A DNA stretch of 63,503 nucleotides, filler included, from Octopus bimaculoides (Eukaryota), in assembly GCF_001194135.2 (NCBI RefSeq). It is 4 parts of 4 records of this genome, joined end to end, with 100 filler letters (N's around TTAATTAATTAA, not from the genome) between each part and the next. Parts side by side here need not be neighbours in the genome. Positions count along the whole stretch, not along the records: positions 31,397 to 53,419 come from NC_069010.1; 3 more parts are not named here. The stretch is one strand, 5' to 3'. Below the pieces are notes generated by a model. That model made no database searches and was not told the DNA's origin. It worked only from the letters and a program-made list of their open reading frames with translations. Both the position numbers and the translations under genes were made by a program. Positions 32,451 to 54,110 of this stretch are shown here, in pieces. Each line of letters begins with the position of its first letter. The first letter of the stretch is position 1.

Positions 32451-32705
32451 GCATAATTTAATGTTAATGCCTATGATTTTCCTTACATACACATAGACAC
32501 ATCAATATACACCAACATACACGCGCACAAAATGAAATACAAAGATATATATTTACATAAAATCATACTCTCATGCATAAATTGTCGGAAATAAGTTAAA
32601 GAGAGAGACACGCACACAAAGTTAGAGAGTAAATAAGAGAGAGAAAATAAATTGATTCCAGAAATATTACGTTAGTAACATATTATCAACAATAATTGAA
32701 CTTAC

Positions 32706-32777
32706 ACTATCTGTAAACTGGTAAGGTTGTGGAAAACTCCGCGGTCGATTTTGTCAATCATATTATTTCTGAAATGT
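32706..32777 (-). CDS. 72-nt LRR exon, (L)HFRNNMIDKIDRGVFHNLTSLQIV
   Basis: Exactly 72 nt between TTATGTTACAG| and |GTAAGT, phase 2/2, one 24-aa LRR. Joins in frame to the 43376 exon (TT+A = Leu). Not in the ORF track. Confidence 0.88.
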
Positions 32778-32889
32778 CTGTAACATAAAACAAAGTTTAA
32801 ACTAATAGTAAACGAAAGTTTCCTGATGAATTATTTAATCTTCAGTCAGATGAAGAACATCGGACAATGAACGACAAAAGCCCAGCAAA

Positions 32890-33368
32890 GATGATGATGA
32901 TGATGATAATGATGATGATGATAATGACGACGTTGATGAATGTGATGATGATGATGATGATAATCATTATCATCATCATCATGAAATAGGTGAAAGAGGC
33001 AGAAATTGATGGCAATATCGGAAATTGCGAAGGAAAATCAATGGTAGAACGTATAGATGTATAAAACTGGAGAGCGATGAAACGAAACAGATGTTTGAAA
33101 ATTTGTAAAATAGGCGAAACAATATTTTGAGAATAAAAAAGAGATGATGACCATACTCAAATTAACGGAAAATCATGAAGAAGAAGACAAAGAGGAAGAA
33201 GCTGAAGAAGAAGACGAAGAGGAAGAACATGAAGAAGAAGATTAAGACAGAGGAGGAGGAGGAGAAGAAGAGGAAGAGGAAGGAGATATGTAGAAGTTGA
33301 AGTAGAAGAACTGTAATTATAATGATAGAAAGAACACAAACAAGAACAGGTATTATTAATATTATTAC

Positions 33369-33400
<32 letters not shown>

Positions 33401-34050
33401 ATAGCAGAAACAACAGCAGCAGTACAAGAAGTATGAGGAATGGAAGAAGATGAAGGAGGGGGAGGAGGGGGGAGGAAAGATAAAGATTGAAATGAAAAAT
33501 TAGAAGTTAGCTTATGATTAAGGGGAAGAGAAAGAAGAGCAACAAAACATGTACAGCAAGAACAAGATGAAGAATAAAAAGGAGGAGAGGAAGAACAGTT
33601 TGAAGAAGAAAATGAACAAATAAAGAGAAAGATTATGATGATGATGTTGATTATCATGATAATGATGATGATATCGATGATGATGATAATCATGATCACG
33701 GTGATGACGAAGTCGACAGTGATGATGATGATGATGATTGTAATGATGGTGTGTAGGGGATGGGGAGGAAGCTGACATGGATTATGATCAAGCTTATTAC
33801 GATGGTGATGCTAAGGATCATACCCATGAAGATTTTGTTGCTTACTCTTTGAATTCTATCCTAATGCTTATGATGATTCCGTCTCTAAACATTATGTCGA
33901 TGATAATGATAATAATGATGTTATTGGTGAGGATGATGATGCCAATGGTGATGATAATGATGGCGAAAATTGCCATGATGTTCACGACGACGACGACCAC
34001 CACCACCACCACCGCGATCACGACGACGACGACGACGACGACCATGATGA
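32890..34050. repeat. Purine-rich compound trinucleotide microsatellite tract, (GAT)n/(GAA)n/(GAG)n/(TAG)n; similar tracts at 47495-47560, 50740-50900 and 53100-53240
   Basis: Direct reading; source of the spurious poly-F/S/L/I/H ORFs in the track. Confidence 0.9.
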
Positions 34051-34060
34051 ATGTAAGGAA

Positions 34061-36467
34061 CACAGTATATTATTGGATGCAATAAGTTCCCTCGTGGAGA
34101 ATTCGGATGGTATTGAGAGACACTACATGTGGCAAAATACAGAAAACTCGCTCGTAATTGGTTCACGATGCAAAGAGTATTTAGAGGTAACGCCTTGCTT
34201 TCACAGTAGGCTTCAATATCATTGAGAGAGCTGGAAATCTATTTCAACAATATATACTGGACGTATATGTGAAGTTTGAGGTTTGCAGATTGCAATACCT
34301 TAGAGCAGTAAAGATGGATTTGTGGATTTGTGAAACTACCTGCTCAGAGGGGCTCTTGAGAATGTTGAGCCAGGAGTGCCTGTGATACTTCCATCATCAT
34401 TGACAGGCAGTCCTAGGAGTATGCACCATTTCCATGATGCAATGGTGATTGTAGAAAAGTATTGTAAACCTGACTTATTTGTCACATATACATGACACTC
34501 TTAGTTCTAAGAGACAGAAAATAATTTGCAGCGGAATGAGACTTCTGAAAACTCACCAGATTTAGTTGCAAGAATGTACAAGTTGCATCTCACTGAACTT
34601 CTGAAGGATATAAAGGACATACATGTATTTGTTGTATCAGTGGCTCACGTTCATGTCATTGAGTTTCAAAAGAAAGGACTTCCACACTGCCATATGCTGG
34701 CAGTCTTAAGAAATGAAAACAAGTTGAAGAACCGACATGATATAGATAAAATGGTATCAGCAGAGTTTCCTGATTCAAACAATGACCCAGTCATGCACGA
34801 TTTAGTTGAGAAACTCTTGATACATGGCATTTGTGATGAAGATAACCCCTCCTCACTCACCATGCATAGAGAATGCGTCTTGTCAAAAACATTTCCCAAG
34901 AAGTAGAGAAGTGAGACACTACTAAATATTAATGGATGTCCGGATACAGGAGGCGCAATAATGGGATCACAGCACAAGTTGGGCACCACTCGTCTGACAA
35001 CAGGTAAGTCATTCCATACCATGCTTATCTATAAAAGAAATTCCGAGCTCAGATTAATATAAAAGTTTGCTCCTCTGTAAAAAGCGATAAGGACATCTGC
35101 AAGTATTCTTGAAAGTTCCCGACTGCGCTTCATTTGAAGTAAGGAAGAATGCAGTGGCAGAAAGCAAATAGATTCAACAACCCCATAATGAAATCTGAAA
35201 TCATCTTGCATGTTGATATGTTTCACCTTTTGAACCCATGTAGAGAATATCTGAGTCCAAGTTGCATGACTACTTCCAGACTGTCTACAGACTAGCAGTT
35301 CACCTTGAAGAGACCAGTAGAGCATGTACTTCCACAGAGGTGAAGCTCAACAAGCTGCTCAAAAACAGAAAAGCGTGACACTCCTCTCACTGCATGGTTC
35401 AAATTGAATGAACACGATGAAAATTCACGGATGTACTTGTACCCTGACATTCCTGTACGTTACGTGCTTAATGAAAGTACAAAAAAATGGACACCTAGGA
35501 GAAGGAACATCATCATCAGCAGAAGAATGTACACAGTGAGTCCTAGGGACGTATAAAAACTTCTCTTACGATATTGCTGCTTTTGCATGTTCCAGTCGCT
35601 AAAAGCTTTGAAGAAGTTCGATCCGTAGGAGGTGAAATCAGTGCAACATTTAAAGATACGTGCATAAGACTTGGTCTTCTCCAAAATAATGAAGTGTTAG
35701 AGCATGCCATACTTGAAGCTGCTGCATATCGGCTGTCGTCTCAGCTGCGTATTATGTTTCCCGTCCTCTGCATCTCTTCAGACCCTACTAATGTTCTTCG
35801 CCTGCAGAACACCCATGATGATTATGTGATGGAAGATTATGTTCACTGAGGTCTGAATGCAAAACAAGCAGAAAATATGGCTCTACGCTCCATAAATGCT
35901 GTGTCATTTCAAAATGATACTAGCTGCCTTAATATTGGATTGCCTGAACTAGTGGCAATGCAACAAGTTGAGCATGATGACGTGAACCACATAGGCATTG
36001 TAACCCTTACTGATAAGCAGAGAGTGATTGCTGATGCAGTCATTGAATTAGTTGGAAAGAAAATGAGAGGTGAGGTGCCGGAATGTTCCTGTTTCTATGC
36101 AAACGCTCCCGGAGGCTGTGGAAAATCTTACATTTTTAATGTGCTGGTCTTACATCTGCGGAGAAACAACTATCAAGTGTGCTGTGGTGCGTGGACAAGC
36201 ACAGCTTCGACATTGCTGTCTGGAGGAAAAACGGTGCACAGTTTGCTCAAATTGCCCGTTACACTGTTGGAAACTAGCATTTGCAATGTACCACCCACCT
36301 CTGACCACAAACATAATTTGAGAAATTTGGATTTGGTTATTATAGGTGAGGCATCCATGATCCCTCTATTTGCTCTTCAAGCTATTGACAAAGCTCTGAA
36401 AGACATGACTGACAGCAATGAAGATTTTAGTGGAAAAGTTGTGCTCTTTGGGTGAGACTTCAGGCAA
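34061..36467 (+). mobile_element. Degenerate Helitron Rep-helicase (PIF1-like) coding region
   Basis: Rep motifs KYCKPDLFVTYT, VIEFQKKGLPHCH and ISAE-like VSAEFPD. Helicase motifs APGGCGKSY, ASTLLSGGKTVHSLLKLP, IIGEASM and FG*DFRQ. Multiple stops and frameshifts; termini not seen. Confidence 0.92.
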
Positions 36468-37435
36468 TTCTGTGCAAGATTCAAGTGAGTCAGGTCATAA
36501 TGTAGACGTGTCCTATGATTCATGATTTAATGGGTCGCTGGTAAATGATTCTTTGGCAATGCCTCTCAAGAACAGAGAATTAGTGTATCCTCTCACCAAA
36601 GAGCTCAGACTGCTTAATGATAAACTAAGAGGTTATGAATAAATTACCATGTGACCAGTCACTGGTCACCTCGTATAAGCCCTTCCACAAGACTTAACGT
36701 AGACCTTAAATATATCAATAAATACTCCTGTCATGAACCTATTGTATTTAAAAACTTAATTCCATAAATTAACCGCAGGATCCCTTGACTTTCTTCTTCG
36801 AAAGAAATATTCGAATACGCTGCCCCATATTGTAATAAGACCCTACATGATGGCAGCTTTACTGACAAAATCCACAACCAACCACCTCTTATCATCTAGA
36901 CTGAAGAACTGGTGTCGGAAAGTTTTATGGCTCCCCTCCCTTACATTCCACCCTTAATGTTAGGAGAAATGTAGGTACAAGCTTCTTGCACTTAGTAGAT
37001 ATCCACTTCCCAAGGTTTACGTCGTCCGTTATTTTTTTGATATGACTTAATATTTGGTAGACAAGAAAAGGTTATCTTGTCGGAATTTAAACATACCCAC
37101 CGGACATTTATTATACTAGTAATATCAGGTTTACATCTGCATGAGATTGAATTATTGTTACATCATTTTATATTCTTGTATTGGGGGTATATAATATAAC
37201 GAAACTGAGGGAAGGAAAGTAAACAGACGACGCACTACTGAGACTTCAGGCAATTCTGTGCAAGATTCAAGTGAGTCAGGTCATAATGTAGACGTGTCCT
37301 ATGATTCATGATTTAATGGGTTGCTGGTAAATGATTCTTTGGCAATGCCTCTCAAGAACAGAGAATTAGTGTATCCTTTCACCAAAGAGCTCAGACTGCT
37401 TAATGATAAACTAAGAGGTTATGAATAAATTACCA
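36453..37435 (+). repeat. 197-bp direct repeat: 36453-36649 and 37239-37435
   Basis: Direct reading of both copies; I see only 2 substitutions (gggtcg/gggttg and cctctc/cctttc). Confidence 0.93.
36672..37013 (+). mobile_element. Penelope-like element (Naiad-like) fragment, post-RT/thumb region
   Basis: Across frameshifts: YKPFHKT..LKYINKYSCHEPIVFKNLIP, LSSSKEIFEYAAPY, KVLW..NVGTSFLHLVDIHFP. These match the recalled PLE motifs YKPY..YIN..SNHP, LSSN..IF..AAP and NIG..FL.L.DKHFP. Confidence 0.7.
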
Positions 37436-39866
37436 GTCTTGAGAAACAATCTGCATGACCTAATTTCTTGGAGGGTATATACTTCAAATGGAAATCATAG
37501 TTTAATAATATCGAACCCCAGCGTTGCAATCTATTAGTAGTATGAATAGGGAATCCTTTTTTTGACCCAAATATTGATAATAATGGGTGATAATCAGTCT
37601 GTAGACGAAAACTTCTACCGTGCAAAAATCTGTGAAATTTTTTCACGGCAAAAATAATCGCTAGCGCTTCTTTTTCGATTTGACTATAATTTTTCTCTTC
37701 TGATATCAGAGAACGTGACGTATGAACCACCGTCTCCAAGTTAGTATCTTTATATTTATGTAGCATTAATGCTCCTATACCGTACTAAGAAGCGTCTGAA
37801 GCTACAACAATCTCCGCTGCAGGATCGAAGCATAATAACAACAAATCAGGTATAAATTAATTTTTTAAAATTTTGTCAAAAGCCTGTTAACATTTTTCCG
37901 ACAAATTCCATTTCATATCTTATTTTCAGCAGATTATTCCGTGGATCCCTTGCCTTATGCATATTTGGAATATAAATTTGGTAAAATTTGCCCACCCTAA
38001 AAATGCTTGTACGGTCGCTGTATTTGTCGGAGAGGGTATATTTTTAATTGCATCTGCCCTCGACGGGTCTGGTCGATGACCAACTTCTGTCAATGATTTG
38101 TACTTAATATCTTATTTTCGGTAAGAAAATTTCACACTTTTCGTCACTTAAATTAAGGCCGAAATCCCTATTTTTCCCGAATCCCTAGTTTACGTGTCCT
38201 GTGCGTTGTTCCCTGGATTTGCTCTTAACGAGAATATTATCCAGATATGGATTGTAAGACATCCGTTTAAACCAGTGAAAAATCAGCACACACTATGATC
38301 TTATTCTTTTTCTTAATGTACACAGTTAGTACTGCCTATTGACTATGTTCCACTTTTTGGGTAACTCCAATTTTTTTCTAATCTCTCTAACACTAAGTTT
38401 ATCTGTTATAACCTGTTTAGATACTGGTGTGGAGTGTTCTTTTATTTCAAACCAGGTCTTCGTTTTCGTACACAGACCTAATTTATCAGACAGAACTTCA
38501 AAAAATACTTTTTTTTTTTTCAATTCGTCTGTCGCATTATTTGTACTGGCGAAAAAACCATTCACATCTTTAAAAAGATTTATGGAATATCCCATAAGTT
38601 AAATAATTGCATCGAGTCAGTTACGAATAAGTTTGCTTTTGTATTATTTAACACAAAACTCTAGGTTTTAAGGTTTTTTTAACGAAATGTAATTTTACTT
38701 ATCAATTGGCTCTTAAAATATTTTTTGCTGGTACACGATGGGCAATTTTCGAAGTTAAATTTAATTTAGGTTTCTCGATTTTTTTCCATGTAACTCTGTT
38801 AATTATTGATAAGTCGCTTCCTGTAACTTTACGTTTGTGTTTTAAATGCTTCATACACAAATTCTCTTTGAGGCTCGTTTGTATTTTTTGTCACCGATAA
38901 TCCGATTAGGCGATTTTTTTCTTTTGAACCACTTTTTAGGTTCTGCTTTGCAGTGTAATTTTTTATGACCTATATTACCAAACTTGAAACATTTTATATT
39001 ATCAGACGGAAAATTATTTTTAGAATGTAGACCACTGCAACCATCACATGGATTCAGTCTTGATGTTATCTTCTTATCTGATACCGGTTGACACACTTGA
39101 ATTTGAGAGCAAACGTTCTCTTCAATTTTATTTGCGTCATGATTTATAACCCTCTGACATTCTGCTACTGCTGTAGTCGCTGTTATTGTTGCTGCTGCTG
39201 TAGTCGATGTTGTAACTGCTGTAGCTGCTGCTGTTGTTGCTGTTATTGTTGCTGCTGCTGATTTTGCAACTGTATCACGGAGGCCAACAGGTCTTCCATG
39301 TTAATGAATTTTTCTTTGATTTCGTACCAAAAAAGAAAATTTTAAATGTCCAACGTAAGCTTCGAACAACTCGTCGTCACTTTTATATACTTGTATTAGA
39401 TATCTGATATTACGAAGCAGCGGTGAAGAAAGTATATACTAGACGTACTATTATTACTACTACACTTGAGTCAACGCTCTCAATCTCGACTCACTGGGAA
39501 CTACTTACCAACACGAACTGTTAATCGTTCACAGTTCTCTAATTTATAATAACGAGTCAGCCGACCTTTGGTCACTTGGGGGGAGGAGTCGGGATCCTTC
39601 CACAACACGTTGATTGTCTCTCTTGTATTTTCTTGCCTTCTTCACAAGCATCCCTTGCTCAAAGTTTATTTGTTCAAAAGGTAACCCAGAAACTCAGTCT
39701 TGCTTTCAGCTTGATAAATGGCGGAATAAATTATTTCAACCAGGAAACCCTTAGAAACTGTATTTACAAACTTTGTGTATTTTTATTTTAAGATTGCCTT
39801 TACTCTCTTAACTGATTGAGGGTTTTCTTCTTTGTGTAGGATTACCACATAATATGTATGTACACA
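37436..39866 (-). mobile_element. Truncated Gypsy/Ty3 LTR retrotransposon (Mag/K02A2.6-like): putative 5' LTR, gag, partial RT, RNase H; integrase missing
   Basis: Gag start MEDLLASVIQLQNQQQ, degenerate zinc knuckles (CDGCSGLH, CFKFGNIGH), TVYIKKKNKIIVCADFSTGLN, YLDNIL, RPDPSRADAIK, VASDAS, NYSQIEKEALAIIFAVKKFH..TDYHPL..HADCFSRL. PBS-like TGACGACGAG at 39379-39370. RT core deleted between GLNGCL and YLDNIL. LTR limits (about 39392-39866) are uncertain. Confidence 0.9.
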
Positions 39867-39880
39867 TATAGATAGATATG

Positions 39881-39932
<52 letters not shown>

Positions 39933-40534
39933 GAGTGAGAGAGTGGAAAAGAGAGAGTGCGAATGAGACTGAAAATATTCAGATGTGCTCTCATGGATCA
40001 GCGTAGAGATATTTATATATTTAAAGAATAGATTTACAGGGAGTACAAAGAATACAGAAATCTAACGGAAGGGATATGGTATTTCGGGTCCGACAGCCAA
40101 TTCTAGGAGGCCGGTATTTTATATAATGTTTGTAATGTTGGCAGTTGGAGTGTGTAACATCTCAAAGATATGCAACCAGTTGTGAATGCATATAAACGTT
40201 ACCGTAAACCCGACCAGTATCGTCAGGGTGGAAAGATCGGCAACTAACAGTGGTTGGCTATGAAAAGGGCTCTGAGATCCAAATTGATTAGGTTTAGTGA
40301 AAAAGTGATAACTGAATATTTTAGATTTCTTCATTCTTGCCGAGAGGCGATCATGGGGTGTGCGAGAAAAGAGTCACCGGACCTAGATTGTCTACTCTAC
40401 GAGCCTTATTTGCACATGCCGCATATGTTCGAGGTGCTTCTCGGCAGATGTCTACTAGAACGGGAGAATTCTCAGTCCTGCAAAAATTGGTGTGGTCGTA
40501 TTGCTAAGAAAATACTGGAACAGGAGCGGGGGGG

Positions 40535-41293
40535 GTTTTAACACCTTCAGTTAAATGTAGTCTTCAAGATTTTGTGATGGTGTTAGTTAAGTATTTGGCG
40601 TGTGACGTCAATACTTAGGTGGATGAGATACAGACGTGTACCATAACACACAATTTCCGCTCCAAGAAATGCATCATAGCAAGTATGGATAAAGAACCTG
40701 GATGGTGGGATTCTAATCTATACTTTGAGGCTGAGGTCGTGCCTCTCTTGGGAGGCTTGATCGTTCTAATTTACAGTAATACTTCCTCAGTAGTGTGAGT
40801 AAATGTTCAGATGTTTATTCGCTCAGTATAATTCTATCGATCAGTCAAGAGTGCCTTTCCCTCCCAGTTTATATGTCTAGTCCCTAGATTTACGACTGCA
40901 GACGTTGAAATTTCAAGCCGTAACCATTGAGAACTAGAGAACGCAAGTTTTGTGTTTGCATAACATATTCATGGAGTACGTGCTCGTCGGTGTTGGGCAC
41001 CAAATACATCGAAATGATCGGTACTTCACTAAGGGAATACGAGGTGGAGACAGGAGTAAAGATTAATCAAATCTCGTTGGGCTGTTTACCGGCACCTAGA
41101 GAAGCAGGCCCATTCTGTTCACCTTCGTTGTCAGACACTGGACGGACTAGTTAAATTGCTTGGAGTTTCCTTTGGTGCAGCTCCCCTTCCCCACTGGACA
41201 AGAACTGGAAAGAGCTGATCTCATCCCAAGAAATGGGCTGCGGAGAAACTATCCCTGAATGATCTAGCATTCATCATCTCTTACCGTCTGACT
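40535..41293 (+). mobile_element. L1/Tx1-clade non-LTR retrotransposon RT fragment
   Basis: Across frameshifts: LNVVFKIL, VDEIQTCTI, IEMIGTSLREYEVETGVKIN, VKLLGVSFG, DKNWKE, EKLSL, SYRLT. Confidence 0.75.
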
Positions 41294-41599
41294 CTCATCT
41301 CTTGCCTAGGTTTTTTTTTTTTAGGAAGTCTGTGAGCTCATGAAGTCGGATTTGACCTATTTTGGGGTCACTTGCTATCGTACAGATACATCTTGCCATA
41401 GTGTATGTTCCTTTTTGGTGTGTGAGGGATGGCAAGAGTAGAAATTTGTGTCTGTTTTTTTGTAAAATATATATCTGTTGTGACTGTAGAGTTGTGTATT
41501 TTTATGTGGATATCCAGGAATGGTATTCCATTACAAATGGTTTCTCTCGTTAATTTGATATATGAGTGAAGTGTGTTGAAGATGTTATTTAATATTTAT

Positions 41600-41800
41600 A
41601 GATTTTTATTTGAATTGTCCCAAATAATGAAGGAGTCATCGAGAAAGCGTTTCCACATTTTTTGTTAGTTGTTTTTAGTCCTTTTCTCCTCATTCTTGAT
41701 GCATTAAACCTCAGTCCGTTCCCATTATTAACGACTTGTCCTTCATCCCATAAACAGCAGCTCTCTTCATCATTCTTGTAAAGGTTGACCTGCAACTACT
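41600..41800 (-). mobile_element. Penelope-like RT catalytic-motif fragment
   Basis: KMWKRFLDDSFIIWDNS resembles the PLE W.RYxDD.F.IW motif; an LFMG-like stretch lies upstream. Confidence 0.55.
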
Positions 41801-43375
41801 TAAGAGGAATGTTAATGATATCTATCTCACCAGCATTGGAGAGGCTGAAGGAGTTATAAGACCTGACTGATCCTCTCTCCAAAACCGAAACAAAAAGAGT
41901 GAGAACTCAACTCACATCACAAACAACTGGACGATATACTGCAAGGTGTCTGAATCGACATCCTTAAAGTTGCGCTAATTCTTTGCTCTGTTATGGTTCT
42001 TTATTGATCTCGGAAATGAATGACATGAGGTTGACCTCGGCCGGATTTCAAGTTAGAAATTCTGTGTGTCAGAAAAAATACTGCAACGCATTCTACTGCA
42101 ATGTATTGCAATTTCAGTCAATTCGCGGTTATATTATGAATGATGAAAATATCTAACTTATTAAATGGAACATCGACTTTACTATTTAACATCTTGAGAT
42201 ATACGTGATTTCTCAATTGGTCAAAACGTTCCAAATCTGTTAAGAAATAGATCTGATCCGCATTAGTATTGGAATATTTGATTAAAACTGAAAGTTTAAG
42301 GTGACTAAACTATTTAATTTGAAATAATCACCTGGAACACAGTTTATTCATGATTGTCATCAGCAAGTATTAAATAATTACTGAATTTTATTCTATTCCA
42401 TGACTTAAGTCTTTAAATGTTAATAAAGCACTAAAAAAGTACAATAAAACATGTAAAAATTACAAAATTTTCAGGGCAACTGAGAGACATCAATCAGCCG
42501 AAACTTCAATTAAGCTTGCATAATTTTGTAATAATTGTGTAATAAGTTTTATTGTGTTCATGATAGGGTAAATTTTACTGATGATATTCTGTCAAAAGTA
42601 AATTCCTCATAATTTGTTCAAACAGCACTATTTTGATTTCATCACTTAGGTATTTTAAGAATTTAGCAATTTAAACGGATCTTGTCATTATCTGCAATTT
42701 AATCCGTCTGTATCATTTTAAATTGTAAAAACAATCATTTTTTCTATAGAAACAAACCTGAAATTTTGGAAAAGGGACAAGTCCTTTATATTGATCTCAG
42801 AGCTAAATTGGTATTTATTTTATCGAACCCGAAAGAATGAAAAGCAAAGTCAACCTCCACAGAATTTAAAATCGAAACGTAAACACGGATGAAATACCGA
42901 TTAACATTTTGTCCGGCGTGCCCAAAGATCCTGCTAGTTCACTGCATTTTTAATTGTAAAATTAATACAAACAATATTTAAAATCTATTCTGTGACACTG
43001 TAAAAATAAACAACAATTCAACTAATTAATGAAATCATATAATTCTGCGAAATACACATGTTTTGTTAGCACCTACGTTTTTATACTGCCCGTTCATTGA
43101 ATATACCGTAAGATCAGATGAAGTTAGACAAATAACATCAAACTTCAGATGTTAACCATATCCAATCATTGTGTATGCGATGTTATGCATTATAAGCTCA
43201 ATATAAGAGAAACAGTTTATTTGACTTCACATTAAGTAACATATCAATCTGTTTTACATAATATTATGTTTTTAATGCTGTGAGATCAACAACAGAATCG
43301 GTTGGCTGAGAACATAATCAATGAGAAATTAAAATATTGGATGTGGAGAATACGTAGAAAGTATCAAATACTTAC

Positions 43376-43563
43376 AAATATTTAACATTCATCGGAATTG
43401 GTTGTGGGACTGATGATAGTTGGTGATTTTCACAATTTACATTTACAGGTGATTTGCAAGTGCATATCTTGCATATTTCTGAAACAGCATGAGCCTCCAA
43501 AACCAATATCAAACACAGTATCAACGCAAATATTTGTATATATGATACTATGTGTTGAGACAT
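43376..43563 (-). CDS. First coding exon of an extracellular LRR protein: signal peptide + cysteine LRRNT cap
   Basis: Translates MSQHIVSYIQIFALILCLILVLEAHAVSEICKICTCKSPVNVNCENHQLSSVPQPIPMNVKY(L): hydrophobic signal-like stretch, then CxxCxC-x6-C and LxxVPxxIP, typical of LRRNT. Phase-2 donor TT|GTAAGT at 43375. Acceptor TTTTACAG ends at 43584, so the exon spans 43583-43376 with 20 nt before the ATG. Confidence 0.85.
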
Positions 43564-44149
43564 ATTTTCAGATGTAGATTTATCTGTAAAACAAGAAAAT
43601 AGAAAATATCAGAGACTTCAATGTTTTTAGTTTTACACTGCAGAATCTTCGAAGGAACTAAAATTAGCCCCTGTTCCATATAACAAATATGTATTGTTTT
43701 CATAATTTGATATTCAAAGTAACAAAATTAAATTTTGATAAATTACTCTGAAGAAACTTATTAAAGACTAGCTAGGAGTGGCTGTGTGGTAAGTAGCTTG
43801 CTTACCAACCACATGGTCCCNNNNNNNNNNNNNNNNNNNNNNNNNNNNNNNNNNNNNNNNNNNNNNNNNNNNNNNNNNNNNNNNNNNNNNNNNNNNNNNN
43901 NNNNNNNNNNNNNNNNNNNNTGTGTGTGTGTCTTTGTGTATATGTTTATCCTCAAACATCGCTTTAGTTCAGGTGATATTGCTTCCGCACTCGTAACTGG
44001 ACGATTAGGCAAAAAGACTAAGAAAATAAGTAGATAACTAAAATATAGCAGTGGGGGCGATTTGTTCGACTAAACGTCTGTAAATTGGTGTGCCATTAAG
44101 GCCGCATTCTAATGTGTGAAATAAGTTAGTTTGGATATGTTCATATTGC

Positions 44150-44744
44150 GACCAAGTCTGTGACTTGTGCAGATGTGGATGATCCCATCGCGGTTCTGAT
44201 TTATTCCATAATTTACCATCAATGTCTACTACAAATATTATGCCGATTTCGTGTCGGAACATATCTAAGTGTTTCATACCATAAATCACTGCTTTATTGA
44301 GGACGATCGGGTTAATAGTGTAGTAGTATTTCTCTATATCTAGTTGAGAGAATTTACTATCTTTGTTAATTTGTAGATGCTTAAGCTATCGAATTACTTC
44401 TTGAGTATCTGATCAGGGCGCTAATTTAATTTTGGATTCAGGGCAGGCGGATTTTCTTACTAATCATTCCTGTATCTGATTTAGATGGACATATCAGTGC
44501 AAATTAGGGATCAAATGGAATTTAAGTTTATGGACTTTAGGCATAATTCAGGATTTTCTAGGGACGTAAGGCTCAGTTCTATCATCTATATCTAAATCTC
44601 AGGCGAGTTCTTATTTTGTATTTGTAATCCTTGCTAACATGTCGTTATTGACGTGCCTATATTTACTGAGCAGTTCCTTCCTAATCATATATTTATATAA
44701 CACAATATTAACGGTGTAAATGCTACATAAGTTTGTTCACTGGG
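44150..44744 (-). mobile_element. Penelope-like (Naiad-like) RT fragment, left arm of an inverted duplication
   Basis: PSKSDTGMISKK, KFSQLDIE and AMGSSTSAQVTDLV. It is the reverse complement of 47877-48748. Confidence 0.8.
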
Positions 44745-45479
44745 NNNNNNNNNNNNNNNNNNNNNNNNNNNNNNNNNNNNNNNNNNNNNNNNNNNNNNNN
44801 NNNNNNNNNNNNNNNNNNNNNNNNNNNNNNNNNNNNNNNNNNNNNNNNNNNNNNNNNNNNNNNNNNNNNNNNNNNNNNNNNNNNNNNNNNNNNNNNNNNN
44901 NNNNNNNNNNNNNNNNNNNNNNNNNNNNNNNNNNNNNNNNNNNNNNNNNNNNNNNNNNNNNNNNNNNNNNNNNNNNNNNNNNNNNNNNNNNNNNNNNNNN
45001 NNNNNNNNNNNNNNNNNNNNNNNNNNNNNNNNNNNNNNNNNNNNNNNNNNNNNNNNNNNNNNNNNNNNNNNNNNNNNNNNNNNNNNNNNNNNNNNNNNNN
45101 NNNNNNNNNNNNNNNNNNNNNNNNNNNNNNNNNNNNNNNNNNNNNNNNNNNNNNNNNNNNNNNNNNNNNNNNNNNNNNNNNNNNNNNNNNNNNNNNNNNN
45201 NNNNNNNNNNNNNNNNNNNNNNNNNNNNNNNNNNNNNNNNNNNNNNNNNNNNNNNNNNNNNNNNNNNNNNNNNNNNNNNNNNNNNNNNNNNNNNNNNNNN
45301 NNNNNNNNNNNNNNNNNNNNNNNNNNNNNNNNNNNNNNNNNNNNNNNNNNNNNNNNNNNNNNNNNNNNNNNNNNNNNNNNNNNNNNNNNNNNNNNNNNNN
45401 NNNNNNNNNNNNNNNNNNNNNNNNNNNNNNNNNNNNNNNNNNNNNNNNNNNNNNNNNNNNNNNNNNNNNNNNNNNNNNN

Positions 45480-45536
<57 letters not shown>

Positions 45537-45815
45537 CTTTCTAATTTATATTCTGTCTTTATATTTTCTTTTGTGTATGTATGAAGATGTGTACGAGTGC
45601 ATGTGTCTGTGTGCTGATAAGCAAATGTTTTATGCATGAGAATGAACATGTGCATCAGAGTGAACATATGAACATGTATGTTTGTATCTGTGTCCGTGGG
45701 GCGTGCCTTCATGTCNNNNNNNNNNNNNNNNNNNNNNNNNNNNNNNNNNNNNNNNNNNNNNNNNNNNNNNNNNNNNNNNNNNNNNNNNNNNNNNNNNNNN
45801 NNNNNNNNNNNNNNN

Positions 45816-45992
45816 ATTACCGCAATGAGTATATGGGAAGTAACGGTGGTCAGATATAGTGCATCTATCCTCAAATGGACTAAGGAGGAAATATAAACAC
45901 TTGATAAAAAGACGAAAAAGTTGATGACGCTGCATGAGGCTCTACACCCAAACGCAAACGTAAACAGGCTGTATATGAAAAGAAAGGAATAG
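45816..45992 (+). mobile_element. R4/Dong-like (restriction-like endonuclease non-LTR) RT C-terminal fragment
   Basis: AMSIWEVTVVRYSASILKWTKEEI*TLDKKTKKLMTLHEALHPNANVNRLYMKRK matches the recalled R4/Dong motif AINTWA..RYS.GI..WT..EL..LDRKTRKLMT....LHPK.DV.RLY..RK. Confidence 0.75.
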
Positions 45993-46545
45993 GTCTCCCA
46001 TAAATACTAATAAAAACTTATGATTTTCTACGTGAAGCAACCCTCAAAGTATGTCACTCACACTTTGTCTTTACGTGTGTATATGTATAAGAGTAAGGTA
46101 TTTCATTGGGGTGACAGAATGACTGAAAACAGTATGAAGCAAATTTTTAGTGGCTTCATTTTCTGTGAGTAAATATGATTTTTTTACACACGCAGATATA
46201 CACACAGACACGGAGGCACGCCCCTCGGTCACAGATACAAACATATATGTTCATATGTTCACTCTGATGCACATGTTCATTCCCATGCATAAAAAATTTA
46301 CTTATCAGCACACAGACACATGCACTCGTACACATCTTCATATATATACAAAAGAAAATATAACGACAGAATATAAATTAGAAAGGGAGCGAGAGAGAGA
46401 GATAGGGAGAGAGAGAGATAGAGAGAGACAGACAGACAGAGAGACAGAGAGACAGAGATAGGGAGAGAGATAATAAGAAAGAAAAGGCTTGAAATTTCTA
46501 GTGATTTTACGTTACAAGAATAATATAAACAAAAATTGAACTTAC

Positions 46546-46617
46546 AATTTCTGTAAATTGTAAAGATTTTGGAAGATTCCACGTTCGATTTTGTCGATCT
46601 TATTATACTCCAAAGTT
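46546..46617 (-). CDS. 72-nt LRR exon, TLEYNKIDKIERGIFQNLYNLQKL
   Basis: TTATGTATACAG| acceptor, TT|GTAAGT donor, 72 nt, phase 2/2. It is the C-terminal end of track ORF 46542..46799. Confidence 0.88.
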
Positions 46618-47574
46618 CTGTATACATAAAGCAAATTTGAAAGGAAATAGCATAGAAAAGTTTTCTGATAAAACATTAAATTTGTAGTCTTAAAATCAGA
46701 TGAGAAAGGAGGGCTATGAAAGAAAAATGCGTGATGGTGATAATGAGGAGGGGAATACAGAAGACAGGAGGGAGCAGGTAGAGAAAAGGGGCGATACACA
46801 ATGAAAGACTGAGCGGAATAATGAAGGTAATGAAAGAAAATAATTCATACATCGTATAGATCTATAAAAGTGCAAGTAGAAGACGATGGACCAAATATGA
46901 CATATGAGAAATGAAAAAAAAGCAGTTGAAAAATTTGAAAGAACAGAAATTGATGAACATGAACCATGTAGAGGAAAATTGTGAACACGAATCAAACACA
47001 TATTAGAAGCACGATGTGGAAAATAACGAAAATCCGAAAGAGGGAGGAGAAAATATCTTTGAATATAAATAGTACAGTCACACATACCCTTATATGCACA
47101 TACATACAATTTCGTCCAGGATATCAATCCTTGATGTAGATACACTCACACATACTTTCGAAGATATACATCCAAACACTCTCAAATACATTCACACAAA
47201 AAATGAGTGAGACAAAATGAATTAGAGAAGAATCGAGTGGGACGAAAAGCCATATGTGAAAGCAATAAGTATTTAGAATTATCCTCGGACGATATTGCTG
47301 ATACTATAATGGTGAAGACGCCTGTGGCATGAAAGAGTTTTGATACGCAATTCTATTTCAGAGAAATATCATAGATTGTTAATATTGAGTCTTAAATTAG
47401 GGAAAAGAAGAATGAAGACGATGGAGAAAACGAGAATGAAGATAACGATTACAATTACGAAGAATGAGATACCGAATGATAAGAAGCACAGGGAGTAGAA
47501 GAAGAAGAAGAAGAAGAAGAAGAAGAAGAAGAAGAAGAAGAAGAAGAAGAAGAAGAAAGCAAGGAAGGAAGAAG

Positions 47575-48748
47575 GGCTAAACCCAGTAAGAAGCATTATA
47601 TAAGCCAACCAATTCATACAAAGAATGCAGTGGAAAGCTTTCTTCTTTGACAAAAATGATATCACATGGCAAACCTGAACATGGAGATCTACTAAGAAAA
47701 GTTATTAAATCAAGAAAAAACCAAACGACCAACCATCACCTAACCAGATTTTTAGAAGAATTATATAGTACAGTTAAGAAAGTGAAGTTCTGTAAATACC
47801 ATAGAAGTTACAAAAAGTTTTAGCAAATTATCAAAAAATTACTTGATGACATCGCGAAAAGTCCAGGAACCATTGTCCCAGTGAACAAAACTATGTAGCA
47901 TTCACACTGTTGATATTGCGTTATATAAATATATGATTAGGAAGGAACTGCTCAGTAAATATAGACACGTGAATAATGACACGTTAGCCAGGATTAAAAA
48001 TACAGGATAAGAACTCGCCTGAGATTTAGCTATAGATGATAGAACTGAGTCTTACGTCCCGAGAAAATCCTGAATTATGCCTAAAGTCCAGAAACCTAAA
48101 ATCCATTTGACCCCCAAGTTGCATTGATTTGTCCATCTAAATCAGATACAAGAATGATTAGTAAGAAAATCCTTGATAGAGTACCGCCTGCCCTGAATCC
48201 AAAATTAAATTAGCGCCCTGATCAGATACTCAATAAGTAATTCGATAGCTTAAGCATCTACAAAATAACAAAGATAGTAAATTCTCTCAACTAGATATAG
48301 AGAATCACTACTACACTATTAACCCGATCGTCCTCAATAAAGCACTGATTTATAGTGTGAAACACTCAGATATGTTCCGACTTTTCGCGATATTTAAGGC
48401 GGCGAGCTGGCAGAAACGTTAGCACGCCGGGCGAAATGCTTAGCGGTATTTCGTCTGCCGCTACGTTCTAAGTTCAAATTCCACCGAGGTCGATTTTGCC
48501 TTTCATCCTTTCGGGGTCGATTAAATAAGTACCAGTTACGCACTGGGGTCGATATAATCGACTTAATCCATTTGTCTGTCCTTGTTTGTCCCCTCTGTAT
48601 ATTGCCCCTTGTAGGTAGTAAAGAAATAACACTCAGATATGTTCCGACACAAAATAGGCATAATATTTGCGGTAGACATTGATTGTAAATTATGGAATAA
48701 ATCAGAACCGCGATGGGATCATCCGCATCTGCACAAGTCACAGATTTG
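47575..48748 (+). mobile_element. Penelope-like (Naiad-like) RT fragment interrupted by a SINE, right arm of the inverted duplication
   Basis: FIQRMQWKAFFFD, VKKVKFCKY, IVPVNKT, LAIDDRTE, PSKSDT.MISKKILDR, KFSQLDIENHYYTI..LNKAL and MGSSASAQVTDL, with stops and frameshifts. Confidence 0.82.
48398..48627 (+). mobile_element. tRNA-derived SINE with a Nin/Deu-type central domain (family B); 21-bp target-site duplication
   Basis: GGCGAGCTGGCAGAA (A-box-like), GTTCAAATTCC (B-box-like), GCCTTTCATCCTTTCGGGGTCGATTAAATAAGTACCAG core. AACACTCAGATATGTTCCGAC is duplicated at 48361-48381 and 48628-48648. Confidence 0.88.
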
Positions 48749-49740
48749 NNNNNNNNNNNNNNNNNNNNNNNNNNNNNNNNNNNNNNNNNNNNNNNNNNNN
48801 NNNNNNNNNNNNNNNNNNNNNNNNNNNNNNNNNNNNNNNNNNNNNNNNNNNNNNNNNNNNNNNNNNNNNNNNNNNNNNNNNNNNNNNNNNNNNNNNNNNN
48901 NNNNNNNNNNNNNNNNNNNNNNNNNNNNNNNNNNNNNNNNNNNNNNNNNNNNNNNNNNNNNNNNNNNNNNNNNNNNNNNNNNNNNNNNNNNNNNNNNNNN
49001 NNNNNNNNNNNNNNNNNNNNNNNNNNNNNNNNNNNNNNNNNNNNNNNNNNNNNNNNNNNNNNNNNNNNNNNNNNNNNNNNNNNNNNNNNNNNNNNNNNNN
49101 NNNNNNNNNNNNNNNNNNNNNNNNNNNNNNNNNNNNNNNNNNNNNNNNNNNNNNNNNNNNNNNNNNNNNNNNNNNNNNNNNNNNNNNNNNNNNNNNNNNN
49201 NNNNNNNNNNNNNNNNNNNNNNNNNNNNNNNNNNNNNNNNNNNNNNNNNNNNNNNNNNNNNNNNNNNNNNNNNNNNNNNNNNNNNNNNNNNNNNNNNNNN
49301 NNNNNNNNNNNNNNNNNNNNNNNNNNNNNNNNNNNNNNNNNNNNNNNNNNNNNNNNNNNNNNNNNNNNNNNNNNNNNNNNNNNNNNNNNNNNNNNNNNNN
49401 NNNNNNNNNNNNNNNNNNNNNNNNNNNNNNNNNNNNNNNNNNNNNNNNNNNNNNNNNNNNNNNNNNNNNNNNNNNNNNNNNNNNNNNNNNNNNNNNNNNN
49501 NNNNNNNNNNNNNNNNNNNNNNNNNNNNNNNNNNNNNNNNNNNNNNNNNNNNNNNNNNNNNNNNNNNNNNNNNNNNNNNNNNNNNNNNNNNNNNNNNNNN
49601 NNNNNNNNNNNNNNNNNNNNNNNNNNNNNNNNNNNNNNNNNNNNNNNNNNNNNNNNNNNNNNNNNNNNNNNNNNNNNNNNNNNNNNNNNNNNNNNNNNNN
49701 NNNNNNNNNNNNNNNNNNNNNNNNNNNNNNNNNNNNNNNN

Positions 49741-49773
<33 letters not shown>

Positions 49774-50335
49774 CACTTACAATACGAAAGTTCTCTTTGG
49801 GTTTCCGTCTACGAAACCCACTCGCATAGAATTAATCAGTTCGAGGTTACAGCAGGAGTCACACGCAAATATATCAAATAATGCCACAAAAACGTGAACC
49901 ATGAGTTTGATAAGAATCTTCTTGCTGCACAACGAGTGTTTGTGTTTGTGTATGCGTGTGTATGTGTATATATGTGAATATATATATATTGTGTGTGTGT
50001 GCATATAAGTATATATACATATATACATACACATATATATATGTATATATAAATATATATATGTATACATATATATGCCAATATCTATGACTTTTCTTAC
50101 ACACAGATAGACACGCCAACGTTCACAAACATATACGTACAAACAAAGAAATACAACGATATATATTCGCATAGAATCATAGTCTTATACACAAAATATC
50201 AAAAGTAAGTTAGAGAAAAAGGGAGGGAGAGAAAGAGAGAAATAGTCAGACAGACAGTGAGGGTGAGAAAAGGAAGATATATAATTTCTAGAGATATTAC
50301 GTCAATGACATATCGTAAACAGAAATTGAACTTAC

Positions 50336-50407
50336 AATAATTGTAAATTGGTAAGTCCGTGGAAGGTACCGCGATCGATATTCTCGATCGTATTATTCTT
50401 CAAATAT
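50336..50407 (-). CDS. 72-nt LRR exon, YLKNNTIENIDRGTFHGLTNLQLL
   Basis: TTTTATGTTACAG| acceptor, TT|GTAAGT donor, 72 nt, phase 2/2, canonical LRR consensus. Not in the ORF track. Confidence 0.88.
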
Positions 50408-51107
50408 CTGTAACATAAAATAATGTATAAAGGAAAGAGTGAACGAAAGTTTTCAGATTAAATATTCAATTTTTAGTCTTAAAATCAGATGAATAACATA
50501 GAAAAATGACAAAGAAAAGCCTAATGATGATAATGATGATGATGATAAAAGATGCGCTACAGAAGTGAAAATGATGTTAATATCGAGAACCTGAAGGAAA
50601 ATCAACCACAGAACGTATAGCTTTATGAAAATGAAAGTTGATGAAAAGTTTCCAATGCACCAGAAATAGAATAAGTATCTGAGACAATATTTTACAAAGA
50701 GGAAATATATGAAGAACATTACCAGTGTAAGCGAAAGAAGAAGTAGTAGTAGTAGTAGTAGTAGTAGAAAAGAAGAGAAGGAGTAGAAGAAGAAGAAGAA
50801 GAAGAAGAAGAAGAAGAAGAAGAAGAAGAAAAGGAAGATGAAGTAGAAGGAAGAAGAAGAAGAAGAAGACGGAGGAGGAAGCGGAGGAGGAGGAGGAGGC
50901 AGAGATGGCGAAGACAAACAACACGAAAATGGAAATAAAGAAGACGAAAACGGATAATAAATAGTCGCACATATACAGTAGCGATATGGGGGACAGAATA
51001 TGAGTTAGAGTGATAAAAACAACGTAGGAAATAAAATGGAATGGACACTAAGATTTATGTAAAAATTGCATTCATAGATATTTTTCAAGAAAAGTGAAGG
51101 AGCTTAC

Positions 51108-51179
51108 AATATCTCTAGTCTTGGAAGACCCTGGAAGGTTCCTTGTTCAATACTCGAAATATTATTTCTGTAAGCATAC
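51108..51179 (-). CDS. 72-nt LRR exon, YAYRNNISSIEQGTFQGLPRLEIL
   Basis: TTTTTTACTGCTTCAG| acceptor, TT|GTAAGC donor, 72 nt, phase 2/2. Ala replaces a normally conserved Leu. Confidence 0.82.
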
Positions 51180-51876
51180 CTGAAGCAGTAAAAAACGATA
51201 GAAATTTTAATGGAGATTATTTGTGATGAAATATTGTATGAGTGTCTTGAATAAAACAAACGATGACAACATAGATTATAATATACAAGAAGGATAGGAC
51301 AAAAAAGACGAAAAACAAGAAGTAAAACAATACCAANNNNNNNNNNNNNNNNNNNNNNNNNNNNNNNNNNNNNNNNNNNNNNNNNNNNNNNNNNNNNNNN
51401 NNNNNNNNNNNNNNNNNNNNNNNNNNNNNNNNNNNNNNNNNNNNNNNNNNNNNNNNNNNNNNNNNNNNNNNNNNNNNNNNNNNNNNNNNNNNNNNNNNNN
51501 NNNNNNNNNNNNNNNNNNNNNNNNNNNNNNNNNNNNNNNNNNNNNNNNNNNNNNNNNNNNNNNNNNNNNNNNNNNNNNNNNNNNNNNNNNNNNNNNNNNN
51601 NNNNNNNNNNNNNNNNNNNNNNNNNNNNNNNNNNNNNNNNNNNNNNNNNNNNNNNNNNNNNNNNNNNNNNNNNNNNNNNNNNNNNNNNNNNNNNNNNNNN
51701 NNNNNNNNNNNNNNNNNNNNNNNNNNNNNNNNNNNNNNNNNNNNNNNNNNNNNNNNNNNNNNNNNNNNNNNNNNNNNNNNNNNNNNNNNNNNNNNNNNNN
51801 NNNNNNNNNNNNNNNNNNNNNNNNNNNNNNNNNNNNNNNNNNNNNNNNNNNNNNNNNNNNNNNNNNNNNNNNNNNN

Positions 51877-51919
<43 letters not shown>

Positions 51920-52922
51920 CAAAGAAACAGAAGCAACAGATGAGAAAAGCAGAAGATAAAGATGTGGGAATGGAAAGAGGAAAAGGAAAAAAGAACAAGA
52001 AGAAAACGACGAAGACTAAGAACAAGGACAAGAGGGAGAAGACGAAGAAGAAAAAGAAAAGGAGAAAACATGGAGAAGACATGCTTAAAAGATGATAGGA
52101 TGAAGCAGAGAATGTAGCAAAAGAGAAAACAACAAATAATTCGGAGATTAAGAACAGACTTTGGAAGAAGATAAGTTGGGAAAGAAAAACTCAGTTGCTT
52201 GCTGTCAGATACACACATATGCACATACAGGTTTTCACATACATTCATTCACGGATACACTTGTGCATAAAATATGATATGTTGTGTAGTCATACCCACG
52301 GTTACACTAACACACATTGAAATGCACTCCTCGCAAATGTGATGAGAGAGAATATTAGTCGAAAAGAAGAGAAAGGAAAGAACATGGGAAAACATCACAA
52401 ATTTATAAATAAACCATCGGTGAAAAAATATCTGGGCAATTGATGTACATTATAAGTGCTGGCAGTTTGTATTGTTTACAGAGAGAAAGTAACATTTGAT
52501 TATTTTCTAAGAGTTAATATTCTTAAATTGTCCATCAACAAGTTGCTGTTTCAGAAAAATAACCTGAAGTGAATGAAGTCGGAGATGAATAGAAGAAATC
52601 AGTGAGAAAACTGAACAGAACAAGCCGTAAAAATAGAAGACAAAACATATGAATACAAATTGTTTGGTCACATATACATTTAGACTCTCACATATACATG
52701 AACATGCACAGATGCATTTCCATTAATAAGTTTTAACGCAAACATATATATTATCCCAGTAGTACTCGACTTCAGAATCAGTCAAACAGATATGATGTCA
52801 ATATGGGGATAGAATAGGAGGTACAGGGATAAAAAGAGTGAGGGGAAGAGAAATGAGAGGACAAGAAGGTTATGTAAAAATAACCTTCATAATGCATTAT
52901 CTTCGAAAGTGAACGAACTTAC

Positions 52923-52994
52923 AATAACTGTAAATTATTGAGACCTTGGAAGCTTCCTTCTTCAATACTCAAAATATTATTTCCGGTTAAATAT
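52923..52994 (-). CDS. 72-nt LRR exon, YLTGNNILSIEEGSFQGLNNLQLL
   Basis: TTCTTTATTGCTACAG| acceptor, TT|GTAAGT donor, 72 nt, phase 2/2, canonical LRR consensus. Confidence 0.88.
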
Positions 52995-54110
52995 CTGTAG
53001 CAATAAAGAACAAGGGTAACAATTATGGAAAATATGTGTGGTAATATATTGAATAATGTTTCTGAAATGAAACAAACGATGACAAGACAGATTATGATAA
53101 AGAAGAAGAAGAAGAAGAAGAAGAAAAAGAAGAAGAAGAAGAAGAAGAAGAAGAAGAAGATGAAGAAGAAGAAGAAGAAGAAGAAGAAGAAGAAGAAGAA
53201 GAAGAAGAAGAAGAAGAAGAAGAAGAAGAAGAAGAAGAAGAACGTGAAGAAAAGAACAAGATATTGAAAGGAGAAGAACAAGAAGGTGATGAAGAATAGA
53301 TGGAAACATACAAGAAGAAAATAAGTTTAGTAACAAATAGAAATTTAACGAGAAAAGAAAAGTATATGAAGAAGAAAAAGAACAAGATGCGGAAGTAGAA
53401 GAGGAGGAAAGTAAGATGANNNNNNNNNNNNNNNNNNNNNNNNNNNNNNNNNNNNNNNNNNNNTTAATTAATTAANNNNNNNNNNNNNNNNNNNNNNNNN
53501 NNNNNNNNNNNNNNNNNNNATATATATATATAGTTTTAGGGAAAAGAACCAAGGTTCATGAACTCATCGATGAAAATCCACTGTCACATAGAAAAACTAA
53601 TAATTAAAAGCACAATAAATGAGTATATGCATATATACGTACATCTATGTACATACTTACATCTATCTGTATATATAGATGCATATCTGGGTACAGGACA
53701 TTGTAAACAACACGTAGACAAAATGATAAACAGAGTACAGAAAACACACAGGCCACAAGCCCGGTTTCACCCGGTCGGTTTGGATGATGTGGCTGTAAAA
53801 CCTGCTCTGTGTAAGCATTCGACTTGTTTGGGCACGCTTATGTTAAAAAACAATTTTAGAATGACATTTTTCTGTTGAAACGCTAAAAATAACTAACCAA
53901 CAACAAAAGACAACTAAGATTGAACAAAATCAAAAATTAAACCCAAATACTAAGCGAACAAAGATGAACCATTCCAATTCCATTGCGCGCGCACGCACAC
54001 ACATTCACATACTCCCCTTTTACATACACACACATATATTTACAGAGTTGAAACGCTGTTTGTTTTATTTTTTCAGCGTACAATTTTCATCATCCCACTA
54101 CCAAGTATGA

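Follow-up and report, generated by a model that had tools for sequence, protein, structure and literature searches.

Exons at the locus

The window analyzed here is a stretch of 63,503 nucleotides (nt) of Octopus bimaculoides DNA (RefSeq assembly GCF_001194135.2) joined from four parts, and the coding features that we studied lie in the part from NC_069010.1 (positions 31397 to 53419; 36% G+C, six N runs), all on the minus strand. They comprise five leucine-rich repeat (LRR) exons, which we call E1 to E5, a decayed LRR exon (X6), and an exon that encodes a signal peptide (SP) and an LRRNT cap (Table 1). We conclude, with moderate confidence, that the locus is an unannotated member of an octopus-specific family of LRR-bearing adhesion G protein-coupled receptors (GPCRs) and holds the 5′ end of one unit in a tandem cluster of these genes.

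Table 1. Exons and intron of the locus, listed in the order of transcription
Feature	Type	Sequence	Positions	Strand	Details
LRR exon E1	A	YLTGNNILSIEEGSFQGLNNLQL	52923-52994	-	72 nt, phase 2/2
LRR exon E2	A	YAYRNNISSIEQGTFQGLPRLEI	51108-51179	-	72 nt, phase 2/2, donor GTAAGC
LRR exon E3	B	YLKNNTIENIDRGTFHGLTNLQL	50336-50407	-	72 nt, phase 2/2
Decayed LRR pseudo-exon X6			47267-47346	-	Acceptor retained, in-frame stops, donor gone
LRR exon E4	B	TLEYNKIDKIERGIFQNLYNLQK	46546-46617	-	72 nt, phase 2/2
SP/LRRNT exon		MSQHIVSYIQIFALILCLILVLEAHA (signal peptide)	43376-43583	-	ATG at 43563, phase-2 donor
SP-E5 intron			32778-43375	-	10.6 kb, ungapped, transposon-swollen
LRR exon E5	B	HFRNNMIDKIDRGVFHNLTSLQI	32706-32777	-	72 nt, phase 2/2; sole LRR exon downstream of the SP exon

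Each of the five LRR exons is preceded by a polypyrimidine tract and AG and followed by GTAAGT, or by the variant donor given for E2. The exons start on the third base of a codon and end in TT, so that the junction codon is always Leu, and each encodes one LRR of the form (L)xLxxNxIxxIxxGxFxxLxxLxx. A regular expression for an open 72-nt exon between AG and GTRAG that carries the LRR motif found exactly E1 to E5, with one match in 200 shuffles, which excludes chance. The nhmmer E-values for the 72-nt exons were 1e-29 to 1e-34, and the joined exon peptide matched Pfam LRR_8 (E=6e-45). With 24-residue LxxLxLxxNxIxxIxxGxFxxLxx repeats and an N-terminal Cys cap, the exons have the T-type pattern of extracellular LRR proteins. 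The decayed exon X6 was recovered by nhmmer (E=1.3e-5) and by alignment, and a segment that holds most of it (47217-47317) is 81% identical to positions 11259-11359 of an O. sinensis locus, L001.

The SP exon has a conserved acceptor, a 20-nt 5′ untranslated region, an ATG, a hydrophobic signal peptide that ends in AHA, and an LRRNT cap with four Cys; its 3′ end reads TAT TT before the donor GTAAGT, in phase 2. Read by eye, with no prediction tool, signal-peptide cleavage falls after AHA. The Pfam LRRNT model stayed below threshold on the window peptide and matched the closest relative, P0001, at E=2.5e-6. A first-pass annotation of this DNA had described five exons of exactly 72 nt, each one LRR with intact AG/GT sites, and one SP/LRRNT exon with a phase-2 donor, and the splice sites, regular expression, nhmmer, and Pfam results confirm that description.

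The N runs cut the piece up and leave seven contigs. All exons are free of N, and the closest gap edges lie 158 to 1047 nt from the exons, so the gaps are intronic or intergenic and the exon frames are safe.

Duplication of exons with their flanking introns

Units of 250 to 800 bp, each centered on an exon, recur within the window at 68 to 73% identity. The E2 unit (50984-51330) is 72.7% identical to the E1 unit (52801-53143). The E3 unit (50085-50869) is 68 to 72% identical to the E5 unit (32471-33309), and the E3, E4, and E5 units match one another in the same range. The E1/E2 and E3/E4/E5 groups are the two LRR flavors, NNI.TI.EG.F.GL and NKI..IE...FQ.L, that the window shares with the receptor family described below, where they alternate. 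The earlier proposal of a family varied by exon duplication finds support in flanking introns that can still be aligned: each exon is repeated together with 100 to 400 nt of flanking intron at ~72% identity. The decayed X6 and the range in LRR number across the gene models of the family, from 2 to about 17, agree with this.

Membership in an octopus family of LRR-bearing adhesion GPCRs

An exhaustive phmmer search gave output dominated by giant LRR proteins, of which the informative matches are those that start in the signal peptide. There were only two of these, P0088 and P0116, both from Octopus and at 50% identity. A search with P0116 collected about 25 proteins of O. sinensis, O. vulgaris, and O. 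bimaculoides, most of them named adhesion G-protein coupled receptor G6-like. Some members are misnamed slit-like, LRRC15-like, chondroadherin-like, or TLR5, and these NCBI names are misleading for the family. The SP exon is 60 to 67% identical in amino acids to the first coding exon of the family (tblastn, 17 family proteins), and the invariant columns of the first-coding-exon alignment include the four Cys and PQPIP. The first coding exon of the family type, with a signal peptide, a four-Cys LRRNT ending ..PQPIP.N...L, a phase-2 donor, and an upstream acceptor, is thus present here, and nucleotide colinearity continues into intron 1 at 83%. One LRR per 72-nt phase-2 exon is also the rule at the O. 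sinensis loci L001, L002, and L003, and the members of the family are clustered on the chromosome.

The family is the one that NCBI calls "adhesion G-protein coupled receptor G6-like" or "GPR126-like," and it is group 3 of Ritschard et al. 2019 (PMC6408891). These authors reported an octopus-specific adhesion GPCR expansion with LRRs in 5/22 sequences and a Death domain in one, with some receptors co-localized and with signatures of positive selection, and found expression of the O. bimaculoides group to be highest in axial nerve cord, with suckers and skin next. The family itself was therefore already known; what is added here is this copy and the explicit exon-cassette design, since PMC6408891 describes neither exon modularity nor cassette isoforms. 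The protein class, which the first-pass annotation had held could not be named, can be given as the octopus-specific LRR-bearing adhesion GPCR family ("ADGRG6-like"). Its attribution of the sequence to an octopus holds, as the close relatives are only Octopus proteins and O. sinensis DNA is colinear at 72 to 92%, and its suggestion of a cell-surface receptor family is supported.

The domains of the family follow the order signal peptide plus LRRNT, LRRs, LRRCT, a Cys-rich module, an α/β domain, HRM (a weak Pfam match), GAIN/GPS, and 7tm_2. Three proteins (P0165, P0167, and P0168) run from the same type of signal peptide through GPS and the secretin-type seven-transmembrane region (7TM) within one protein, and GAIN/GPS with 7tm_2 is present in the relatives P0167, P0268, and P0174. 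P0268 carries LRR, HRM, GAIN, GPS, and 7tm_2 domains, and among solved structures ADGRG2, ADGRG6, and ADGRG3 are closest to its GAIN+7TM part (E=1e-48 to 5e-60). The O. bimaculoides protein P0174 (GPR126-like) carries a Death domain. An AlphaFold model of the family member P0159 has a mean pLDDT of 53 and is confident only in the LRR block and one α/β domain.

The Cys-rich module between LRRCT and HRM has ~90 residues with 10 Cys and ends in CCxGxLCNKNDF (for example, P0088 ~385-470; L002 29290-41594), and it is repeated in tandem two to four times in P0157, P0290, and P0154. Judged by its sequence, it is reminiscent of the Ly6/uPAR three-finger domains. Pfam UPAR_LY6 gave no match on the module, which Pfam does not recognize.

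Exon order and the number of units

Along the direction of transcription, the exons follow each other in the order E1, E2, E3, X6, E4, SP, and E5. Four LRR exons thus precede the SP exon, and the six intact exons as assembled cannot form one reading frame that begins with the signal peptide. The single locus or gene implied by the first-pass annotation is therefore not upheld, and the nearest O. sinensis counterparts of the SP exon and of E4/E1 are in two genes 0.9 Mb apart. On ungapped contigs, physical linkage is limited to SP with E5 (32199-43820) and E2 with E3 (49741-51336); E1 and E4 are each alone on their own contig.

The segment 41687-43765, which holds 200 nt of upstream sequence, the SP exon, and 1.7 kb of intron, is colinear with positions 4477-2331 of the O. 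sinensis locus L002, at 76 to 92%. The matching part of the P0157/P0290 gene is its first coding exon plus intron 1 (83% over 1352 bp). In the ungapped sequence of that gene, the SP exon is followed by 72-nt phase-2 LRR exons 0.7 to 2 kb apart and then by LRRCT exons, and the 10 kb that lie upstream of this SP exon contain no LRR exon. The E4 unit (47197-46313) is colinear with L001 25080-25986, where E4 is 86% identical in nucleotides to the exon at 25755-25826, and the E1 unit (53319-52361) is colinear with L001 26107-27907 at 71 to 81%. In the O. sinensis P0268 gene, E4 and E1 correspond to neighboring LRR exons with the E4-like exon first, the reverse of the order in the window. The P0157/P0290 and P0268 genes are on the same chromosome and on opposite strands.

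From this comparison with O. sinensis, the window most probably contains parts of two units of the family, or else contigs that have been misordered. The piece would then be a stretch of a tandem cluster of octopus-specific LRR-bearing adhesion GPCR genes. The conserved acceptor, the SP/LRRNT exon, the 10.6-kb transposon-swollen intron, and E5 as the first LRR exon would make up the 5′ end of one unit, whose remainder (LRRCT, Cys-rich module, HRM, GAIN/GPS, and 7TM) is predicted to lie beyond the low-coordinate edge. The upstream array of four intact and one decayed LRR exons may be part of a second unit of this family or of misplaced contigs.

Misplacement could also mean that all six exons belong to one gene whose contigs are out of order, with a true order that begins with the SP exon, such as SP-E5-E1-E2-E3-E4 or SP-...-E2-E3-E4-E1. 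We regard this as unlikely. Five gaps leave short contigs whose ends lie in transposon copies, microsatellites, or a short interspersed element (SINE)-like repeat, the O. sinensis exons that correspond to E4 and E1 are adjacent in the opposite order, and the first LRR after the SP exon in the family is normally of type A, like E1; all of these would suit a misordered single gene. A further sign of a troubled assembly is the segment 45480-45715, which is an entire 236-bp contig between two gaps and an inverted copy, 92% identical, of 46207-46443 in the intron directly downstream of E4. However, a single ungapped contig carries both SP and E5, so E1 to E4 cannot fall between them. The best O. 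sinensis matches also differ, with the P0290 gene for the SP exon and the P0268 gene, 0.9 Mb away on the other strand, for E4 and E1, and the O. sinensis SP exon lacks LRR exons in the 10 kb upstream of it. Exon order taken from short-read scaffolds of this cluster should not be trusted. If the inversion of 45480-45715 is real, the gap at 44745-45479 could conceal an E4-like exon in inverted orientation; otherwise, the inversion is an assembly artifact.

The RefSeq model of P0268 begins inside an intact 72-nt LRR exon (L001 9934-10005, O. sinensis CM016887.1), and we found no signal-peptide exon in the 10 kb upstream of the model start; this gene model is probably truncated at its 5′ end. Between the X6-like remnant and the E4-like exon, O. 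sinensis has ~13.7 kb (L001 11359-25112) that are absent at window positions 47217-47159. This difference is a large insertion or deletion between the two species or paralogues.

Constraint on the exons and evidence against a functional receptor

Nine skeleton positions of the repeat are almost invariant (mean entropy of 0.18 bit over eight exons), while the other positions have 1.66 bit, so that the residues that determine the fold are conserved and the surface is variable. The exons all keep their exact length, open frame, and splice sites, and their flanks are rich in indels with ~28% substitutions. Nucleotide conservation of the exons is no higher than that of the flanks. We read the exons, on these sequence patterns, as functional and under selection that may be limited to the fold-determining residues, with a very young relic as the rival reading.

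Several observations weigh against the assignment of the locus to a functional receptor gene of the family. Motif scans and tblastn found no LRRCT, Cys-rich, HRM, GAIN, or 7TM exon within the piece, which ends 1.3 kb downstream of E5 (the O. sinensis LRRCT, Cys-rich, and HRM exons are 8 to 25 kb further), so that receptor membership is argued from homology of the N-terminal exons only. Many family gene models stop before the 7TM, for example, the 477- to 525-amino-acid (aa) isoforms, and a secreted or truncated product is possible. The reading of the window as two units leans on scaffold joins across gaps. We found no annotated or transcript-derived protein that matches at >75% for the LRR exons or >67% for the SP exon. 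A word-indexed protein search with the joined 183-aa peptide returned nothing but an unrelated protein and a fragment of a paralogue (116 aa), and a profile of first-exon peptides returned only two short O. sinensis fragments; the index is lossy for such a query, which makes the missing orthologue weak evidence. Rates of change point the same way. The SP exon is 82% identical to that of O. sinensis, against 83 to 89% for the intron, which is divergence at the intron rate, and its ratio of nonsynonymous to synonymous rates (dN/dS) is ~1.6, not significantly >1 (5.3 synonymous versus 28.7 nonsynonymous changes). For pairs of LRR exons, dN/dS is 0.25 to 1.2, values that on 23-codon exons are too noisy to tell relaxed from diversifying selection. 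The fast evolution that had been proposed for the locus is thus borne out, and the dN/dS values of both exon types would also be expected of a young pseudogene.

The exons could accordingly be nonfunctional relics, that is, partial duplicates of family genes in the cluster that are not expressed and were recently freed from selection, an explanation to which we give a low probability. The missing protein or transcript-derived match and the neutral-like divergence are what relics would show, as are the decayed X6 among the exons and the heavy transposon invasion of the intron. The first coding exon of another gene also follows E1 to E4 within 3 kb, with no LRRCT or 7TM exons between. However, in all six exons the frame is open, the length exact, and the AG and GTAAG sites intact, and the four LRRNT Cys and the L/N/I/G/F skeleton are kept, all while their flanks accumulated indels and substitutions, and X6 is what lost constraint looks like.

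Comparison with known LRR receptors

This copy differs from the annotated octopus ADGRG6-like proteins that we retrieved in that it is at most 75% identical to them in any exon, its downstream domains fall beyond the piece, and LRR exons precede the SP exon as assembled. The resemblance to vertebrate ADGRG6 and ADGRG2 is in the GAIN+7TM part of the relative P0268, and the NCBI name reflects the 7TM half only. ADGRG6 carries CUB/PTX domains, and we know of no vertebrate subfamily G receptor with an LRR ectodomain. ADGRA2 and ADGRA3 (GPR124 and GPR125) share N-terminal capped LRRs, HRM, and GAIN/7TM with the octopus family. The octopus relatives, however, show no Ig domain, have a 7TM nearer subfamily G, and carry the Cys-rich module between LRRCT and HRM.

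Slit proteins carry four LRRNT-LRR-LRRCT blocks and, after them, EGF, laminin-G, and CTCK domains. In the relatives with the same first coding exon there is a single LRR block and neither EGF nor LamG, and true Slits match only over the LRRs, at 27 to 30%; Slit was rejected as the identity of the locus. An LGR/glycoprotein-hormone receptor (7tm_1, no GPS) was rejected because the relatives carry GPS and 7tm_2. A Toll-like receptor, which has a TIR domain in the cytoplasm behind its LRR ectodomain and one TM helix, was also rejected, as TIR occurs in no family relative, and P0172, the O. bimaculoides protein named "toll-like receptor 5," carries the family's LRRCT, Cys-rich, and HRM motifs instead of TIR. 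That the locus is an orthologue of any classical one-LRR-per-exon gene (Slit, LGR/glycoprotein-hormone receptor, LRIG, or Toll-like receptor) is highly improbable: gonadotropin receptors have the same exon design (72 nt, phase 2; PMC11378527) and NCBI names some members "slit-like," "LRRC15-like," or "toll-like receptor 5," but these names rest on LRR similarity alone, the relatives with the SP/LRRNT exon have GPS and 7tm_2 and no EGF, LamG, 7tm_1, Ig, or TIR, and genuine Slit, LRIG, and TLR proteins have much lower scores, confined to the LRRs.

The exon design itself has parallels. Gonadotropin receptors encode one LRR per exon of 72 nt in phase 2, as cited in PMC11378527, and LGR5 has splice variants that lack exon 5, exon 8, or exons 5 to 8, which is in-frame skipping of LRR exons (PMC4891500). 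LGR4-6 and the glycoprotein-hormone receptors thus share one LRR per exon and phase-2 introns with the octopus family but have a rhodopsin-type 7TM without GAIN/GPS. Their LRR exons are of ancient origin and are not known to have flanking introns that can be aligned, whereas the octopus units, flanks included, are still ~72% identical. In brown algae, ROCO LRR genes have 72-bp phase-2 single-LRR exons, exon shuffling, and multiple splice variants of the LRR cassettes (PMC11378527). These encode cytoplasmic LRR-ROC-COR GTPases of an unrelated lineage, so the shared gene design is convergent.

Alternative use of single-repeat exons

Symmetric phase-2 exons allow repeats to be added or skipped without a frameshift, as in the annotated isoforms of paralogues. 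One O. sinensis paralogue has seven RefSeq isoforms (X3 to X9; 477, 501, or 525 aa) that differ only by exact 24-residue LRR blocks present, absent, or substituted in repeat slots 2 to 6, and O. vulgaris models differ by 24, 48, and 72 residues. These isoforms are annotated models. The alternative cassette use proposed for this DNA is backed only for paralogues in other species, by annotated isoforms of O. sinensis and O. vulgaris. By analogy with these paralogues, cassette use is plausible for the family.

We suggest that unequal crossing-over may add and remove the symmetric 72-nt repeats and that the spliceosome may skip or swap them with the frame kept. The curved, ligand-binding LRR domain would thus be lengthened, shortened, or re-surfaced ahead of the GAIN/7TM signaling module. 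This copy would be expressed and end in a 7TM, and the choice of cassettes would alter ligand specificity. More tentatively, and we doubt this more than we believe it, the single-LRR exons may form a combinatorial cassette system in which one gene yields numerous ectodomains with different repeat numbers and surfaces, as the seven O. sinensis isoforms suggest, and tandem duplication of exons and genes keeps bringing in new cassettes. Such a system would amount to a recognition repertoire based on splicing, comparable in spirit to Dscam or the clustered protocadherins, in the tissues for which Ritschard et al. 2019 give expression of the O. bimaculoides group (axial nerve cord, suckers, and skin). 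In that case, the intron flanks that still align could be conserved elements of splicing control and not mere relics of duplication.

Lineage-specific expansions of surface receptors, protocadherins and GPCRs among them, have been connected with novelty of the octopus nervous system. The locus shows how an LRR-bearing adhesion GPCR expansion is built, with a ligand-binding domain made of frame-neutral exons of one repeat each, whose duplication and loss still go on, and the annotated isoforms of its paralogues include such exons alternatively. Should the choice of cassettes be regulated, this family could yield cell-by-cell diversity in a mechanosensitive or adhesive class of receptors.

Repeats at gap edges and in introns

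The repeats at the gap edges include a 47-nt sequence present at 32126-32172 and 43774-43820 (94% identical), beside two gaps and with a microsatellite after each copy; the copy at 43774-43820 directly abuts its gap. ARAGORN called no tRNA in these SINE-like repeats, which are probably the cause of the assembly breaks here. An interspersed repeat occurs as inverted copies at 44153-44744 and 47877-48748 (91 to 93% identical), both of which reach into gaps, and partial copies of it are numerous in the O. sinensis loci at 74 to 91% identity. Long low-complexity tracts (trinucleotide and poly-purine/pyrimidine) lie at 33157-34100, 50453-51048, and 53025-53385, in the introns beside E5, E3, and E1, and give long spurious open reading frames (ORFs).

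The first 1.7 kb of the SP-E5 intron is homologous to the 3.5-kb intron 1 of the O. sinensis gene, and the intron contains Helitron_like_N/PIF1 and RT_RNaseH ORFs. The former belong to a Helitron remnant with several broken frames at 34526-36455 on the plus strand (Helitron_like_N, E=2e-14; PIF1 helicase, E=2e-24). The latter marks a long terminal repeat (LTR) retrotransposon fragment on the minus strand at 37419-37766 and 38851-39096 (RT_RNaseH, E=5e-20). A nearby ORF rich in Cys, His, and Lys, which has no Pfam match, is by our own reading possibly gag. A 197-bp direct repeat (36453-36649 and 37239-37435; 99% identical) lies between the LTR fragment and the Helitron.

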